Sequence record: MF459647.1
DNA length: 64,000 nt
Reading direction: 5' to 3' (one strand)
Shown here: piece by piece, positions 56,791 through 64,000 of the stretch
Layout of the letters: each line of letters starts with the position of its first letter
Numbering within the stretch: the stretch's first letter is position 1
The notes under the pieces: generated by a model
The model's input: the letters and a program-made list of their open reading frames with translations, nothing else
Told to the model about the DNA's origin: nothing
The model's database searches: none
Made by a program: the position numbers and the translations under genes

Positions 56791-58311
56791 ATGGCAGATA
56801 AGAAAAAGAAACTTGCTCCGGTCACCAGTAATTTGAAAGAGGACGTAGATGCGGCAATCAATGAAGCCGCTGCAGAGATCGTCGCCGAGTCGATTACCCA
56901 GAAAGCTATCGCTGCGGTAATGGACAAATCTGATGAGGTCATTGCCAACACCGTGACCGATGTACTTGAAATCGTGGAAGAAGACGAAACCACAGGTTCT
57001 GTTCGTGGTCGTCTTAAGAAGAAGTACACCGAACCGAAAGGGCTGGCAAACGGCCGTCTGCAATTAGACACCGGTTCAGGCGAACTCAGCGTACAGCGCG
57101 ACAAAGTAAAAGACGTGCTGGAAACCTACCCGCTGGTATCTATCTACGGTGTGGAGCTGAAGCCGGTGGGTGAAAAGCTGTCGTTTGGTGAAGTCATCGG
57201 TTATGACTCTGTCCTCGGCAACTATACTCGCAACCAGCACCGCATGGTGCGTTATCTCCCGGTAGGCGGCGGAAGCAAATTCCACCATTTCGCCTTTGTG
57301 CTGAATGGTACTACCACACACCTGTTCATTACTGATGGTTCGTCCTACGTCGTTAATGACAAAAACAACACCTACTACTACGCTCGCAATAAGGGCACCA
57401 TTGCGGCGGCCATCATCGTTAACAGCAAACTCACCAACGTGTTGCTGGAAGGCGGTAGCATGACCTACAACGCCATCATTGACGAAACCACACTGAACGA
57501 CTCCATTGTGGTAACGCTCGATAAAGAAGAGATGGCCCGCAATCACGTGGCCGGCAACGATGGCATGTACCGTCGTGGACATCAGTATTTCGACATCCAC
57601 GGCACCGACAATCAAATGACCACGGTTGATGAGTGTCACCTGACGCGTACAGATGTGGTTAACTGCCAGATTACTAAGGTGAACGCCACTCAGACCAATA
57701 TGGCCAACACGGTAATCCGCAATAACAAGCAAACCTGCCTGATCGACACCACCATCGGTAACAGCGTAATTGACGGCGCGTTCTATTTTGAAGCACGTCG
57801 TTCGTCGCTGGCCGTTAGCATCAACGCAACCCATCGCGTTGAACTCAGCAATGTGCGTCTCTACGGTGGTAACTTCCACCATATACCGTATGAAATACAG
57901 GTTGAGTCGCCGTTTGGTATCACGAAGATCTCCTGGATGGACGATACCAAAGTTCGCATGTTGACCAGCAAAGACGGTGTCGTGCTGGAGATTCCACAGA
58001 ACAACGTGGAGAGCTACGCCGATCGCTTCCTGTTCATTCCTTACGATCAGCCGGAACAATCGCATGCTCAGCTTCGTGGTTGGCAACCGCCGCATGTTGA
58101 ACAACTGATCACCGAACATATGCGCTTCTACCGTAACGGCAAGCGTTTGCCAAAACCAGACCTGATTCAGCAAAGCTTCTTAACGTATCTGATCGATACC
58201 GTTAACAGCCGCCTTAAAGTGCTGAGCCTGCTGGAAGCGGTGAAACATAACCGCCACACGGTTGCCCCAGGGTTAAACCGAGGTGACCACGACGACTACC
58301 TGCCGTTCTAA
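56791..58311 (+). CDS. Hypothetical protein with beta-solenoid-like central region
   Basis: AAGGA RBS. 506 aa. N/T/V/I-rich pseudo-repeats (TRTDVVNCQITKVNATQTNMANTVIRNN...DTTIGNSVI). Confidence 0.7.
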   Translation: MADKKKKLAPVTSNLKEDVDAAINEAAAEIVAESITQKAIAAVMDKSDEVIANTVTDVLEIVEEDETTGSVRGRLKKKYTEPKGLANGRLQLDTGSGELSVQRDKVKDVLETYPLVSIYGVELKPVGEKLSFGEVIGYDSVLGNYTRNQHRMVRYLPVGGGSKFHHFAFVLNGTTTHLFITDGSSYVVNDKNNTYYYARNKGTIAAAIIVNSKLTNVLLEGGSMTYNAIIDETTLNDSIVVTLDKEEMARNHVAGNDGMYRRGHQYFDIHGTDNQMTTVDECHLTRTDVVNCQITKVNATQTNMANTVIRNNKQTCLIDTTIGNSVIDGAFYFEARRSSLAVSINATHRVELSNVRLYGGNFHHIPYEIQVESPFGITKISWMDDTKVRMLTSKDGVVLEIPQNNVESYADRFLFIPYDQPEQSHAQLRGWQPPHVEQLITEHMRFYRNGKRLPKPDLIQQSFLTYLIDTVNSRLKVLSLLEAVKHNRHTVAPGLNRGDHDDYLPF

Positions 58312-58322
58312 ACTGCGCTGAC

Positions 58323-58346
58323 CCAGTGGGGGTAATTCCCCACTGG
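58323..58346 (+). terminator. Hairpin (possible terminator or processing site)
   Basis: CCAGTGGGG-GTAATT-CCCCACTGG. Confidence 0.55.
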
Positions 58347-58383
58347 TGAGGTTATCTTTATGATAACCAAGAAGGAATGATTC

Positions 58384-58932
58384 ATGACCTGGCATAAAGG
58401 TAAAAACAAGAAACACTGGCACAAGAAACGAAAGCCCTCTCCCAAGCCGGAGTACCCGCCACCTAAACCGGGCGAAGTGTGGTACAACGTGCACACGGAC
58501 GGCAGTTCGTTAGGTAACCCCGGGCCGGGCGGTTACGGTTGTGTTGTGCGACTGGGAGACACCAAGCTCACGTTATCCAAAGGTTACCACCTGACTACCA
58601 ACAACCGCATGGAAATCATGGCCGTGATAGCAACGTTGGAAGAGTTCGGGCCTAATAAACGGTTTAATATCTTTCTCGATTCTCAATACACAATGGATGG
58701 TGCGACAGGGTGGATATTCGGCTGGAAGAAACGTAACTGGATGACGGGACAAGGTGAACCGGTTAAGAACAAGGACTTGTGGGAACAGCTGTACGACCTG
58801 CTCAAAGAGAATGAGGTCCGCTGGCACAAAGTCCCTGCTCACTCCGGGGTTCCTGATAACGAAGAAGCTGACCAATTGGCCAAAGCAGCCGCAGGCAGCG
58901 CGACGGATACCGATTACGGATACTTAAAGTAA
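58384..58932 (+). CDS. rnhA: Ribonuclease HI
   Basis: HTDGSSLGNPGPGGYG, TTNNRMEIMA, FLDSQY, VKNKDLW, WHKVPAHSGVPDNEEADQLA. Confidence 0.95.
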   Translation: MTWHKGKNKKHWHKKRKPSPKPEYPPPKPGEVWYNVHTDGSSLGNPGPGGYGCVVRLGDTKLTLSKGYHLTTNNRMEIMAVIATLEEFGPNKRFNIFLDSQYTMDGATGWIFGWKKRNWMTGQGEPVKNKDLWEQLYDLLKENEVRWHKVPAHSGVPDNEEADQLAKAAAGSATDTDYGYLK

Positions 58933-59026
58933 TCACCGTCGATACATTCTACAGGGGATATATTCCAATAAAGTCCCCTTTTATTTTTTGATTGTACACT
59001 TCAATTGTTTTCACAAAGGAAATACC

Positions 59027-59578
59027 ATGCAAACTCCTTCAATGTCTCTCGAGGGGAAAGAACTCGTTTTCAATTGGGAGCATGACGAGAAACCTGTGAG
59101 CTTCCGTGTCGAACAGGCTAAGTTCATTCAGCTCGTATGCAAAGCTTGCCGTACGCCGCTGCCGTTGGTGGATGTCTCTAAAGCCTATCAGTGCCAGTGT
59201 GGCGCTGAAATCCAACCGGACGGATTAAATCACCGTGCTGAAGATTATGGCCGGTGGGTAAGCTACCTTGGGACATGGCGTTGTAAAGACAACTACCAGA
59301 TTCTGCTGAAAGACGGACAGGTCATTGACTATGTCTATCCTAACGGCGGGAGCTGGTATCCGGTTACTGACGCCGCCCATAAAGCCGCCAAACCTGAAGG
59401 CCGTTACCTCGATGAAGAGGTGCTGGCTATTCGTCTGGTTCCGGACAACGAACTCAAGTCGCGTTTTGAGTTCACCGGTAAACAACGTCTTGAGCGTAAT
59501 GTCGATTACTTCGGTGACGCATTCCCTGCACAAGACCGGGTAATTAACCTGAACGGACAATACGGAATCTTAGTGTGA
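59027..59578 (+). CDS. Hypothetical zinc-ribbon protein
   Basis: AAGGA RBS before ATG 59027. CKAC...CQCG. Confidence 0.7.
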   Translation: MQTPSMSLEGKELVFNWEHDEKPVSFRVEQAKFIQLVCKACRTPLPLVDVSKAYQCQCGAEIQPDGLNHRAEDYGRWVSYLGTWRCKDNYQILLKDGQVIDYVYPNGGSWYPVTDAAHKAAKPEGRYLDEEVLAIRLVPDNELKSRFEFTGKQRLERNVDYFGDAFPAQDRVINLNGQYGILV

Positions 59579-59757
59579 CGTTAGAGCTCGACGTACTCGT
59601 CTTTATCTGGGTGTACGGGTGCTTGGGTGCAGCATTGATTAAGAAAATCAAATACGACCCGGGAACACCGTACTGGAAAATCTTTCTGATGTACGTGTCG
59701 TTACCGTTAACCTGTGTAGTGTGGGTTGGGGTACGATTGGTGCGTTGGATATTTTAA
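59575..59757 (+). CDS. Small two-TM membrane protein
   Basis: GTGA overlap. Two hydrophobic segments separated by KKIKYDPG. Confidence 0.6.
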   Translation: MTLELDVLVFIWVYGCLGAALIKKIKYDPGTPYWKIFLMYVSLPLTCVVWVGVRLVRWIF

Positions 59758-59766
59758 GAGGTAGCA

Positions 59767-60141
59767 GTGGAAAAGTATAAATACCTTTTGGGACAGACCT
59801 CGTCCCTGAATCAGGTGTTCGTGGTGTTGTCCTCAGCATCCACGTTCACGCACGCAGAACTGGCGTTTAAGTTGGGCATTACTGACATTGTGTCTCAAGG
59901 CGAGTTGCTCTCTACCGACCCGGCGTTTACGCTACCGGCCAGTGAAGCAGCACACCAGGGTGCAATTGATGCATTGCCGGACGATCGTTTCTTTACCGCG
60001 GATGTTCCTCATTTTAGTTTTGCTCACCACATCTATCTGAACGTGGCTGAAATCGACGAAGATGAGTTTCACTACCGTCTGAGAAACATGAGTTCGGCAA
60101 CGCTTCCAGAATCTGGCTTTACCTTTGCTTCACCTTTATAA
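59767..60141 (+). CDS. Hypothetical protein
   Basis: GAGGT RBS with GTG start. Followed by a terminator. Confidence 0.65.
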   Translation: MEKYKYLLGQTSSLNQVFVVLSSASTFTHAELAFKLGITDIVSQGELLSTDPAFTLPASEAAHQGAIDALPDDRFFTADVPHFSFAHHIYLNVAEIDEDEFHYRLRNMSSATLPESGFTFASPL

Positions 60142-60143
60142 CC

Positions 60144-60177
60144 TATTACCCTGCCTCCGTAAGGGGGTGGGGTAATA
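60144..60177 (+). terminator. Terminator-like hairpin, GTAA tetraloop
   Basis: TATTACCCTGCCTCC-GTAA-GGGGGTGGGGTAATA. Confidence 0.75.
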
Positions 60178-60227
60178 TAAAGTTTTACCTCCCTCTTTAT
60201 ATCTATGCGAAAAACAAGGAATACATC

Positions 60228-60494
60228 ATGAATAACGAAACCACCGCTGTAGACGTTCCCGCTCCATTAACCAAAGGTCAGCTGTTGGCCCGTCTTGACC
60301 GCTACGGTCCGGAATACTCTTTCCATAAAGACTTGGTCGCTATCGCCGATTTGGCTGATACGTTGTATACCCGCATGGCCATCAGCCGTAGCCGCCAGCA
60401 CAACATTCAGATTCGTGCGGCGCTGTCTAAATTAAGCGTGGCTGTCGATTGGACAGTTACCGTGTTGAAACAAGATATTGTAAGTTACGAATAA
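60228..60494 (+). CDS. Hypothetical protein
   Basis: AAGGA RBS. 88 aa. First gene of the sspB-folA-acb1 operon. Confidence 0.7.
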   Translation: MNNETTAVDVPAPLTKGQLLARLDRYGPEYSFHKDLVAIADLADTLYTRMAISRSRQHNIQIRAALSKLSVAVDWTVTVLKQDIVSYE

Positions 60495-60503
60495 GGACAC
60501 GTC

Positions 60504-60965
60504 ATGGAAAACGTATACTTGCCTGGATTGCGTAATGCCCTGATGCTGGCATTCATTGAAGAAGCCCGCAGTACCGGTAATCAGGTCTACCTGACGTTAA
60601 ACGCCCGTCGTTTAACTGACCCCGTATTAGCGCCGTACATCAAAGACGGTGTCTTGACCATGAACGTGGCCATTCGTGCTACACCGGGTTATGACGTCGA
60701 ACCCGAGTTCCTGATTCTGCATTCTTCCTTTAATGGAAAGAAAGCCCAGGTCTTTGCGTACTACGATGACGTGATGATGATTGTGGCTTATGACGAAACC
60801 CGTCAACCACGCGCCATGTTCCACATCACTGACCACCATCAGGTTTCTATTCAGATGGAGAATATCAACGCTGCAGCTTTTACGGAAACCAATCCGTTAG
60901 AAGCTGTAAACGAAGAAACTCCACCGCCAGCTAAAGAGCGTCCCAAACTCTCTGTAGTTAAATAA
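60504..60965 (+). CDS. sspB: SspB-like ClpXP adaptor
   Basis: YIKDGVLTMNVAIRAT...SFNG aligns with SspB YARDGQIVLNIAPRAV...RFGG. C-terminal RPKLSVVK matches the ClpX-binding RPALRVVK. Confidence 0.85.
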   Translation: MENVYLPGLRNALMLAFIEEARSTGNQVYLTLNARRLTDPVLAPYIKDGVLTMNVAIRATPGYDVEPEFLILHSSFNGKKAQVFAYYDDVMMIVAYDETRQPRAMFHITDHHQVSIQMENINAAAFTETNPLEAVNEETPPPAKERPKLSVVK

Positions 60966-60974
60966 GGGTGCCGT

Positions 60975-61319
60975 ATGCGTAAATGGTTTTCTGTATTAGG
61001 GCGCTACATTGCTGCCCAATACCAGCTTGGGTTAAAACGTATTCTTCTTAATCACCATATGCGTCGCCTCATTAAGAAAGAGGACCGCATTATTCAAGAG
61101 TTCGAAAGGGCGCTGACGGCACAAGGTAAAGCTTTGCGTAACCGGGGATATTTGTCCCGCCAAAGCCTGAAACACCTTACGCTCCATCTGGCAGATGAGC
61201 TGCACATGCAGAAGTGTCAGATTCGGAAAGTGACGGTAGAACTCATTGACGGTGATTTCTTTATTGATTTAGAGATCGCCACCCATAACCGAACCGTGAA
61301 ACGAATGGTCATCGTGTGA
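60975..61319 (+). CDS. Hypothetical basic protein
   Basis: 114-aa ORF tightly packed in the operon. Confidence 0.65.
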   Translation: MRKWFSVLGRYIAAQYQLGLKRILLNHHMRRLIKKEDRIIQEFERALTAQGKALRNRGYLSRQSLKHLTLHLADELHMQKCQIRKVTVELIDGDFFIDLEIATHNRTVKRMVIV

Positions 61320-61326
61320 GGACAAC

Positions 61327-61905
61327 ATGAAAGTATCCATGATTCTAGCTATGGACCGCAACTGTTTAATTGGGAAAGGCGACCAGCTTCCCTGGCGTCA
61401 CCCGGAAGACCTGTTGTGGTTCAAACAGCAAACCATCGACAAACCGATTCTCATGGGACGTACGACCTATGAAGGATTAGGGCGTCCATTACCAAACCGC
61501 CCCAACATCGTGCTGAGTCGTGCTGACACTAACTTAGTGGGTGATGTAGCACGGGTGCAGTCGTATGAAGACGCACACTACCTGGCTAAGCAGTTGGGTT
61601 ATGATGAGCTGATGATTATCGGCGGCAAGCAGGTGTATGAGTCACTGATTGACCATGCTGACTGTATCTACGTCACGGTCATCGATCACGACTACAACGG
61701 TGACGTCCATATGACCCATCCGTTGTTCGAAGCATTGGCTGGTCGGGACCTCTCTGAGAAGAACCCGGCCTTTACCAATCTCGGCTTTGATCGGTTGTTT
61801 ACTCGCGACGGTGACGTGAGACATGTGTGGGATGTCGAGGTGTTGAACCGTGTCCTTAGCAATGATGTTATGCTCAATTTTGTGAAGCTAACACGTTGCC
61901 ATTAA
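61327..61905 (+). CDS. folA: Dihydrofolate reductase
   Basis: IGKGDQLPW..PED...FK, ILMGRTTYE, RPLPNRPNIVLSR, IIGGKQVY. Confidence 0.95.
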   Translation: MKVSMILAMDRNCLIGKGDQLPWRHPEDLLWFKQQTIDKPILMGRTTYEGLGRPLPNRPNIVLSRADTNLVGDVARVQSYEDAHYLAKQLGYDELMIIGGKQVYESLIDHADCIYVTVIDHDYNGDVHMTHPLFEALAGRDLSEKNPAFTNLGFDRLFTRDGDVRHVWDVEVLNRVLSNDVMLNFVKLTRCH

Positions 61906-61914
61906 GGAAAGGAT

Positions 61915-62349
61915 ATGGGTCTGGGTTACATCGACGTTAAGCTCGATTCCAAGCAAGAAGATGACTTGATTCGGGACTTAACAACTTTAGGGATTAAAGC
62001 TCTACCAAAAGGGAAGTACCACTGTACTGTCATTTATGACAAACGTGAGGAACTTGATAAGCCGCTGTGCGACATCGACCCTGAGCAAGTCTTTGAAGCA
62101 CACGTCGTGGAGGTTAAACCACTCGGAGATGCCCTGGTCTTTACTATGACGTCTAAAGATATCTATGATGAATTTAGACGATTGCAGGAAGCCGGATATC
62201 AGCACAGTTTCCCTGAGCTGTTGGTTCACATGTCAATTTGCTACGACTTCAGTGCGTACGACAAGTTGAAGGTGGAACAGTTCATGGGCCGATGGATAGG
62301 CCGCAACATTCAGTTCTCTCGCGAATCGTTACAACCCGTTAAGTATTGA
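61915..62349 (+). CDS. acb1: Acb1-like 2H phosphodiesterase (anti-CBASS candidate)
   Basis: Two HxT/S motifs (KYHCTVIY, VHMSICY). End-to-end resemblance to T4 gp57B/Acb1 as recalled. Confidence 0.75.
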   Translation: MGLGYIDVKLDSKQEDDLIRDLTTLGIKALPKGKYHCTVIYDKREELDKPLCDIDPEQVFEAHVVEVKPLGDALVFTMTSKDIYDEFRRLQEAGYQHSFPELLVHMSICYDFSAYDKLKVEQFMGRWIGRNIQFSRESLQPVKY

Positions 62350-62354
62350 TGCTC

Positions 62355-62386
62355 CCCTGCCCTCGTCCTACGGGACGGGGGTGGGG
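62355..62386 (+). terminator. Terminator-like hairpin
   Basis: CCCTGCCCTCGTCC-TACG-GGACGGGGGTGGGG with G-U pairs. Confidence 0.7.
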
Positions 62387-62400
62387 TTAATCTATAAGAA

Positions 62401-62426
62401 ATTTCATCTCTAAATTATTATCGTGT
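62401..62426 (+). promoter_or_regulatory. Conserved 26-bp motif copy 5 (more diverged)
   Basis: ATTTCATCTCTAAATTATTATCGTGT. Confidence 0.5.
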
Positions 62427-62472
62427 ATGTAGACCACCTATATACACTTATCCAATCAAGAGGACACAAGTA

Positions 62473-63042
62473 ATGAAAAAGAAAGCGACACATAAATTCT
62501 TCCCTAACGGTAAACAAGTGGGTGAAACCGTTTCTGCGTGTTTAAACAACATGGTGTGGGTTGCTGGGAGTCACGGCGTATTACCGCCGAACATGAATGT
62601 CACTGCGCCGTTCATGCTTACCGCCACTGACCGCATGATGGTGAAGAACTCCGTGTGCAATATCTTGATCGACAATGAAGCCAGCTGGCAGTTAATTCTG
62701 GTGGCCGCTTTCGACAATGCCAAATCCCGCTCTTACGTAACGGCGGATATCCATTTGAATCAATGGACCTTGGCTGAAGTTGGGCAGAAGATTATGGAAA
62801 TCTGTGAAGTCACGGTTCGCAAGATGGAAGAGGTGTTCTACGGTGAAGGCGCGGTTAACCTAAACGATATTCACCACTATGGTTACATGCTGTCGCCTAC
62901 GCAGGGTCTGAATACTGACGTAGTCGAAGAGCGGTTAATCGATGCGTTACAAACGGGTAGCTTTGACCACTACGACTGGAAGTCCCGTCCGGTCATTACC
63001 CCCAAAGACTTTATTGACTCTATCGCGGCTGTGAAGATTTAA
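62473..63042 (+). CDS. Hypothetical protein
   Basis: GAGGA RBS. 189 aa. Confidence 0.75.
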   Translation: MKKKATHKFFPNGKQVGETVSACLNNMVWVAGSHGVLPPNMNVTAPFMLTATDRMMVKNSVCNILIDNEASWQLILVAAFDNAKSRSYVTADIHLNQWTLAEVGQKIMEICEVTVRKMEEVFYGEGAVNLNDIHHYGYMLSPTQGLNTDVVEERLIDALQTGSFDHYDWKSRPVITPKDFIDSIAAVKI

Positions 63043-63052
63043 GATATAGAAA

Positions 63053-63078
63053 TGTTCACGTCTATATAGTTAGGGTGA
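63053..63078 (+). promoter_or_regulatory. Conserved 26-bp motif copy 6 (putative early promoter)
   Basis: TGTTCACGTCTATATAGTTAGGGTGA, followed by GAATAA...TTATTC as in copy 3. Confidence 0.6.
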
Positions 63079-63143
63079 ATAAGTAATACATATTTATTCT
63101 TATAATAACGATATTGACAGTTAATCTACTGGAGATAAAAATC

Positions 63144-63215
63144 ATGGCAAAAGAAAGATTACCTGAGGTACTATTATGGATTACAACATTGAGGATATTT
63201 TACCAGAACGAGTGA
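63144..63215 (+). CDS. 23-aa upstream ORF overlapping the HNH gene start
   Basis: GGAG RBS, then ATG 63144. Reads MAKERLPEVLLWITTLRIFYQNE*. Confidence 0.3.
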   Translation: MAKERLPEVLLWITTLRIFYQNE

Positions 63216-64000
63216 AGAAAAGTTGGAATGCCTTTACCCCACAAGGTCGGGCTAAGACAAGACATGATCTAATGCTTGCTTATCCTGATGATGAGATTTG
63301 GGACTATCTGGAGTATTACCGATACAATCCTTACAATAAGGAAATGGTGAACTCTCACTTCATTGAAAGAACCATTCTTATCAGTAATAAAGGCAACATT
63401 AAACGAACGACAGGCGAAAAAGTTATTCCTTGGGTTACGACTCAAGGATACTTAATAGCTTGGGCCAGAGAACAGGAATTTAGATTCTTAGTTCATCGAG
63501 CGGTTTGTTTGATGTACAACGTCGTTCCGTTAAAAATATTTGAGATTGATTACGCTTGCCTTCAGGTAAACCATTTAGATGGCGACAAGAAAAATCCTGC
63601 CGCTCTTAATCTTGAATGGTCCACACCTAAACAGAACAACCAACACGCAGTTGAAACTGGGTTGAGGGCATATAAGACGGGAATTGATAATCATCGTTCG
63701 ATACCTGTTTTAGTAACTGTTAAAATCGAAGGCCAATATAAAGACTTTAAGTTTATCATTGCAGGTACATCCGAAAGCGATGAACTAAAGTTTAATAACA
63801 ATCATCTCAAATTCATCAATGTAAAAGACAAACTGGTCAAAGGCTGTTTATTTGAAATCGCCGATGATCTAGATATTGAACTTTACAGTAATCCGATTCC
63901 GGCTGAATTGATTCAACTCATCAGAAAGTACAAAGGTAGCAGTAAGGGTCTAATTATTGGAACCAACCTTAAAACTGGTGAGACTAAAACCTTTAATGGG
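63176..64000 (+). CDS. HNH homing endonuclease, 3'-truncated (absent from the ORF track)
   Basis: GAGGT RBS and ATG 63176, frame open to the window end. ILISNKGNI...QGY...LVHRAV...QVNHLDGDKKNPAALNLEWSTPKQNNQHA. AT-rich. Confidence 0.9.
   Translation, partial: MDYNIEDILPERVKKSWNAFTPQGRAKTRHDLMLAYPDDEIWDYLEYYRYNPYNKEMVNSHFIERTILISNKGNIKRTTGEKVIPWVTTQGYLIAWAREQEFRFLVHRAVCLMYNVVPLKIFEIDYACLQVNHLDGDKKNPAALNLEWSTPKQNNQHAVETGLRAYKTGIDNHRSIPVLVTVKIEGQYKDFKFIIAGTSESDELKFNNNHLKFINVKDKLVKGCLFEIADDLDIELYSNPIPAELIQLIRKYKGSSKGLIIGTNLKTGETKTFNG

Follow-up and report, generated by a model that had tools for sequence, protein, structure and literature searches.

The SspB family is represented in the Erwinia jumbo phage vB_EamM_Joad by a non-structural protein, which probably steers or blocks proteolysis by the host ClpXP, as it joins a diverged copy of SspB to a kept ClpX-docking tail. 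The reading that we prefer, with a probability of roughly 0.55, is that of a ClpX-tethered adaptor with a changed cargo specificity, delivering to ClpXP cargo other than ssrA or RseA. The SspB-like identity of this protein is not new, being already recorded in RefSeq, UniProt and PHROG 8945, and for gp039 of the related phage RAY an adaptor role has already been proposed in print. What is added here is a quantitative picture, in which a fixed tail and a freely varying linker accompany a core that appears re-specified yet under selection, together with the recurrence of an equivalent tail in RAY gp39 and phiKZ gp232, which sharpens the hypothesis into one that is testable in phiKZ, RAY and RisingSun-like phages.

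Gene, fold and relatives

The window, meaning the whole stretch of 64,000 nucleotides that was analysed, derives from the Joad record MF459647.1; positions 58000-64000 are 100% identical to that record, and the sister phage RisingSun is 96.4% identical to the same segment. The features discussed are collected in Table 1. The Shine-Dalgarno-like motif of the SspB-like gene shares nucleotides with the stop codon of the 88-aa gene before it, and the encoded protein has the C-terminus ...PPPAKERPKLSVVK, ending in KERPKLSVVK. Regarding existing names, RisingSun gp117 is a 'stringent starvation protein Sspb-like' in RefSeq, the Joad protein is 'Stringent starvation protein B' in UniProt, and the phage family PHROG 8945 ('stringent starvation protein SspB-like') matches with an E-value of 8.8e-65 and 218 bits, aligning residues 1-153 with profile positions 3-149 of 149.

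Table 1. Features around and within the SspB-like gene; positions are those of the window.
Feature	Position	Strand	Remarks
88-aa ORF	60228-60494	+	Directly upstream of the SspB-like gene
Shine-Dalgarno-like AAGGA	60493-60497	+	6 nt before the SspB-like ATG; direct reading of the sequence
SspB-like CDS	60504-60965	+	153 aa + TAA, ATG start, intact ORF; corresponds to RisingSun gp117
SspB-type folded domain, residues 5-120	60516-60863	+	AF2, Foldseek, VIA-align, hhalign
Flexible linker, residues 121-143	60864-60932	+	pLDDT 53-55, no secondary structure
XB-like putative ClpX-docking tail, residues 144-153 (KERPKLSVVK)	60933-60962	+	Matches the bacterial consensus; 10/10 in relatives
114-aa ORF	60975-61319	+	Directly downstream; poorly conserved, 22-57% identity
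Acb1-like 144-aa protein	61915-62349	+	Pfam Acb1 PF23474, E 2.4e-13, 50.5 bits, above cut-off
HNH endonuclease ORF (Joad annotation)	63176-64000	+	ORF start 63176

The AF2 model, for which the alignment input was the 14 relatives obtained from an exhaustive profile search, has a mean pLDDT of 83, rising above 90 over residues 11-110. It begins with an N-terminal helix (residues 5-24), followed by a beta-sandwich, and carries an extra C-terminal strand (114-118) past the region aligned to the solved SspB structures. When this model was compared to the PDB with Foldseek, the top 14 matches were all SspB, and VIA-align superposed 102 of 106 residues on 1ou8_A with a Z of 12.9 and an rmsd of 2.3 A. 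The complexes of E. coli SspB follow with Z of 12.5-12.7 and the alphaproteobacterial orthologues with 9.6-10.1, the next family, Hfq/Sm-like, reaching only 4.5. A profile of the phage clade (A3) was also aligned with one of 14 bacterial SspBs (A4) by hhalign, giving a probability of 99.2% and an E-value of 2e-19 across 134 columns, the tail included.

The preliminary description had considered the SspB core recognisable but much diverged, and both halves of this statement are borne out. In the Pfam family PF04386 the Joad protein scores 25.4 bits (E 1.6e-5), below the curated cut-off of 27, and it lies far under the cut-offs of the NCBIfam SspB equivalogs, while the search of PDB SspB sequences with phmmer retrieves H. 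influenzae SspB at an E-value of 0.011. The relatives P0006, P0008 and P0011 of the same clade pass the Pfam SspB cut-off, with 30.5-34.6 bits. The homology of the Joad protein is therefore weak by single-sequence methods and firm by profile and structure (hhalign 99.2%, VIA-align Z 12.9). A Csm6 identity returned by PADLOC for the same protein (E 0.0025) was rejected as noise, with no domain passing.

The exhaustive profile search yielded only 14 representatives at an E-value of at most 1e-3 among 1.84 billion, and a word-indexed homologue search only two proteins, so the clade is small, without a large family to mine.

Linker, tail and core

The C-terminal part of the protein had been described beforehand as an acidic and proline-containing linker ending in RPKLSVVK, a conserved ClpX-docking tail, and this account holds in its details. 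The linker carries four Asp/Glu and four Pro with no Lys or Arg among its residues, thus being acidic and proline-rich. The tails of 30 gammaproteobacterial SspBs follow the pattern [RK]P.L.[VIL][VI]K, and RPKLSVVK stands at the exact C-terminus of the Joad protein, matching all four tail positions with a conservation of 80% or more (P159, L161, V164 and K165, in E. coli numbering). According to work attributed to the Sauer/Baker and Houry laboratories, L161 and V164 are reportedly the critical XB residues. Within the window, the pattern P.L.[VIL][VI]K occurs once only, at the SspB-like C-terminus, among 434 stop-to-stop frames of at least 50 aa comprising 51,340 residues, and hence chance does not account for the motif.

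Comparison within the clade separates the three parts of the protein. The tail is identical to that of Joad at 10/10 positions in both L006 and L008, while the core retains 82/120 residues in L006 and 40/120 (33%) in L008, and the linker falls from 12/23 in L006 to 4/23 in L008 and 2/23 in L126. Of the three parts, the tail is therefore the most constrained in the phage clade, much more strongly so than either the linker or the core. On the host side, the tail of Erwinia SspB, RGGRPALRVVK, is identical to that of E. coli SspB, and the Erwinia ClpX N-domain is identical to its E. coli counterpart at 58-59 of 60 positions, so the host has the docking surface that is used by the XB peptide in E. 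coli. Given the constraint on the tail and this conserved N-domain, the phage protein would, on good grounds, be expected to dock on host ClpX.

A separate observation concerns the number of host ClpX copies. The chromosome of Erwinia rhapontici (G002:C1:1151033-1153361; L122) has two ClpX-type zinc-finger matches 2.2 kb apart, in frames of 424-425 aa, and two such matches were likewise found in G003. They could possibly reflect either a clpX gene duplicated in tandem in Erwinia or an artefact of assembly; a duplication, if real, would bear on which ClpX the phage tail meets.

Regarding the core, SspB is found in 72 of the 81 genomes of a gammaproteobacterial sample, at 47-150 bits on the Pfam model, a tally that takes in the unpublished genome G042, the sequence of which was itself unused. 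When 30 bacterial SspBs were aligned with the phage proteins, bacterial conservation reached 80% or more at 37 positions of the core, of which the Joad protein keeps nine (L13, A16, V41, G49, N54, A59, F76, G78 and A95). The count rises to 10/37 if the AMF strand (104-106) is registered with the bacterial TMF (102-104), a register inferred from the range of the structural alignment and the predicted strands. Similarly, it keeps 6 of the 21 columns that are invariant in the alignment of 14 bacterial SspBs. The bacterial residues absent from Joad include P11, Y12, R15, W20, D23, N24, T27, P28, P42, N67, R75, P86, A89, Y94 and G99. The earlier view of a much diverged core is thus supported by both alignments, at positions conserved in bacteria.

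The closest phage relatives also share residues of their own, namely E20, R22, K27/R27, D39-P40 and K79, where bacteria have W20 at E20, T27 at K27 and variable residues at R22 and K79, and the Joad core retains N54, A59, F76 and G78 of the central strands. Taken together, the retained central strands and the residues proper to the clade would fit a binding scaffold that was kept, bearing a re-specified surface. Efficient delivery by SspB needs dimerisation, and in the dimerisation helix, predicted at residues 5-24, L13 and A16 are kept and the bacterial-invariant Y12, R15 and W20 are replaced, making the dimerisation of the Joad protein uncertain.

As previously described, high conservation in SspB is limited to the dimer interface and the ssrA-binding groove (PMC9963277), and consequently the losses in Joad must affect the interface, the groove or both. 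A diverged groove is therefore plausible as far as residue conservation can tell. Nevertheless, sequence divergence is by itself no proof of a changed specificity, because the Caulobacter SspB orthologue is equally distant from the Joad model (Z 9.6, 10% identity).

Gene neighbourhood and selection

The SspB-like gene belongs to a co-directional series in the order RNase H, three small ORFs, the 88-aa ORF, the SspB-like gene, the 114-aa ORF, DHFR and Acb1, with gaps of 9 nt on both sides of the SspB-like gene. This order is kept in metagenomic relatives, including a 235-kb contig; as all the syntenic contigs represent one phage lineage, the synteny is no independent evidence of a functional link. 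In L008, L127 and L128 the small gene upstream overlaps the start of the SspB-like gene. Conservation is higher in the 88-aa protein (47-84% identity) than in its SspB-like neighbour (31-69%). AF2 models the 88-aa protein as a confident helical hairpin (pLDDT 87), with no match among PDB structures (best E 2.2), Pfam or PADLOC. It is a candidate partner or cargo of the SspB-like protein. The 114-aa ORF is missing in the more distant relative L128, where DHFR comes directly after the SspB-like gene.

The Acb1-like gene is found two genes downstream of the SspB-like gene, a position kept in all relatives. Acb1 is an anti-CBASS 2H phosphodiesterase, and the RisingSun counterpart, gp120, is named 'RNA ligase' in RefSeq and PHROG. 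The occurrence of a counter-defence gene in the same block as the SspB-like gene is noteworthy. Further downstream, the similarity to RisingSun stops at about 63152, before the HNH ORF. Two extra Joad genes are mentioned in PMC6034870, and the HNH ORF, which is likely a homing-endonuclease insertion, is presumably one of them.

Between Joad and RisingSun the SspB-like gene differs by 18 synonymous and 2 non-synonymous changes, resulting in an NG86 dN/dS of 0.03; the value against L006 is 0.07, with dS near saturation. These ratios (0.03-0.07) indicate that the whole core is under strong purifying selection. In addition, four food-fermentation metatranscriptome runs of a single study provided contigs of close relatives that span the gene and show substitutions but no indels, although contigs from RNA libraries do not prove transcription of the SspB-like gene. 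Compared to positions 59500-62500 of the window, these runs (X3, X5, X6 and X7) contain close phage relatives at 90-99% identity, in at least two variants or strains, and P0008 lies on a 235-kb food-metagenome contig. The Joad-type lineage thus seems to be common in fermented-food or plant material. By mass spectrometry of the RisingSun lysate, gp117 is absent from the proteins detected (PMC6034870, Table 4), which is consistent with a non-virion protein and silent on expression.

Host proteolysis and known systems

Within the preferred adaptor reading, RPKLSVVK, carried on a flexible linker of about 23 residues, would dock on the zinc-binding N-domain of host ClpX in the same way as the tail of host SspB (RPALRVVK). 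The folded domain, which is probably dimeric, would then bind cargo other than the canonical ssrA and RseA peptides, and this cargo, once tethered to host ClpXP, would be degraded in the cytoplasm of the infected cell. The preliminary description had likewise proposed that host ClpXP may be redirected to new substrates. The analysis itself shows the fold, the homology, the tail motif, the purifying selection, the lack of a recognisable phage ClpX or ClpP and the matching docking surface of the host, and from these we infer the binding of the tail to ClpX, the dimerisation, the delivery of the cargo and its identity. The record of the sister phage yielded no ClpP, ClpX zinc finger or tmRNA in a search that also missed the SspB-like gene, for which reason these negatives are soft.

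The main rival is that the protein serves as a competitive blocker, or anti-adaptor, the tail occupying the ClpX N-domains with avidity from a dimeric core, so that host SspB and other N-domain-dependent adaptors or substrates would be displaced and selected phage or host proteins spared from ClpXP. In its favour, no part other than the tail stays constant within the clade and most bacterial-invariant residues of the core were lost, and competitive inhibition by a phage SspB has been proposed from docking models for phage pf16 (PMC5587285). However, the strong purifying selection on the whole core (dN/dS 0.03-0.07), the retained N54, A59, F76 and G78 and the clade-specific surface residues seem more than a dimerisation scaffold needs, leaving blocking as a less probable account. 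Less probable still is an adaptor like that of the host, where additional SspB activity would clear ssrA-tagged products or trigger the sigma-E response. The fold and the tail are intact, ssrA delivery is still performed by orthologues as divergent as Caulobacter SspB, and a near-canonical phage SspB does exist in Ralstonia phage FLC4-3B (115 bits), but only 6/21 invariant and 9-10/37 conserved positions are kept in Joad, with R75, N67, W20, Y12 and P28 all replaced, and the host already has an SspB of its own with the docking tail of the E. coli protein.

A function unrelated to ClpX, for which the SspB fold would have been recruited otherwise and the tail would be an inherited relic or bind another partner, seems very improbable. 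It could appeal to the fact that the fold belongs to a broad Sm-like class, with Hfq matches at a Z of about 4.5; however, a relic would not stay at 10/10 while the adjoining linker falls to 4/23, and the equivalent type of tail recurs in independent SspB-like proteins of jumbo phages. The changed-cargo adaptor can also be placed in a wider, tentative joint reading, where phiKZ-like nucleus-forming jumbo phages might possess SspB-fold degradation adaptors with a host-type tail and re-specified cargo sites, turning host ClpXP against cytoplasmic host proteins of defence or stress response. As part of the same possibility, the Joad/RisingSun clade, with its E20/R22/K27/K79 surface and its coupled 88-aa upstream gene, might be a specialised branch of these adaptors. 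Enterobacter phages close to RisingSun form a phage nucleus and have been placed in the Chimalliviridae (bioRxiv 10.1101/2024.10.29.620934).

SspB-like genes are not restricted to this clade. When E. coli SspB was used as query, they were found in 78 phage records, mostly of phiKZ-like Pseudomonas and RAY-like Erwinia phages, and a structure search of viral models returned SspB-like folds in PhiEaH1, Noxifer, Rebecca, PA7, 201phi2-1, PhiPA3 and others. The SspB-like tail of pEa_SNUABM_54 ends in SRPKLTIVK, and the protein of Ralstonia phage FLC4-3B mentioned above owes its 115 bits to the Pfam SspB model. In the literature search, mentions of the pf16 and RAY proteins were found, and no work on the function of a phage SspB-like protein came up. 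This agrees with the preliminary description, in which such genes were said to be annotated in some jumbo phages and uncharacterised, but the Joad protein itself already bore the SspB-like name and the adaptor idea had been published for RAY gp039.

Bacterial SspB (E. coli and H. influenzae; PF04386; 1ox9, 1ou8, 1yfn and 8et3) has the same plan of domain, linker and XB peptide, its structures superposing on the Joad model with Z of 12.5-12.9 at about 2.4 A. The differences are the sequence identity of about 20%, the Pfam score of 25 bits against 47-161, the linker of about 23 aa instead of about 45 aa, the extra C-terminal beta-strand of Joad that bacterial SspB lacks, and the location of the gene in a phage operon rather than in sspA-sspB.

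[quoted passage not shown] RAY is likewise a jumbo phage and infects the same host, and its gp039 combines an SspB-like domain with an XB-like tail, KKPTLTVVK, equivalent to that of Joad. In infected cells, a GFP fusion of this protein, which is annotated as SspB-like, localises to the cytoplasm (PMC10299810). Nevertheless, it represents a different SspB-like lineage; the genes of the RAY group were not found by tblastn with the Joad protein even at E-values up to 10, and E. coli SspB retrieves them at about 30% identity and an E-value of 1e-8. RAY gp039 also keeps canonical features such as T27-P28. Similarly, gp232 of Pseudomonas phage phiKZ possesses an N-terminal SspB-like domain (tblastn with E. 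coli SspB, E 4e-7) and ends in TPKLTVIKGGKK, where the near-terminal PKLTVIK resembles the Joad tail. It differs by its length of 302 aa, by a large insert between domain and tail, and by the GGKK that follows the motif, which is then not strictly C-terminal.

The SspB of Pseudomonas phage pf16, gp18, is also a phage-borne homologue, for which a role in modulating host ClpXP/RseA has been discussed (PMC5587285). Unlike the Joad protein, gp18 of this T4-like phage is near-canonical, its core sharing 53% identity with E. coli SspB, and it looks like something acquired recently from a host and not like an old phage lineage that has diverged.

Other phages also manipulate the ATP-dependent proteolysis of their hosts, as proposed here for the Joad protein: T4 PinA and T7 gp4.5 act against Lon and lambda RexB against ClpXP. 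Those proteins have unrelated folds and are inhibitors, not mimics of a host adaptor. If the tail does dock on ClpX, mimicry of a bacterial protease adaptor would for the first time be shown as the mode of action of viral proteins, namely the phage SspB-like proteins, and, should the wider reading be true, the SspB adaptors of jumbo phages would be the bacterial-virus counterpart of the viral ubiquitin-ligase adaptors.
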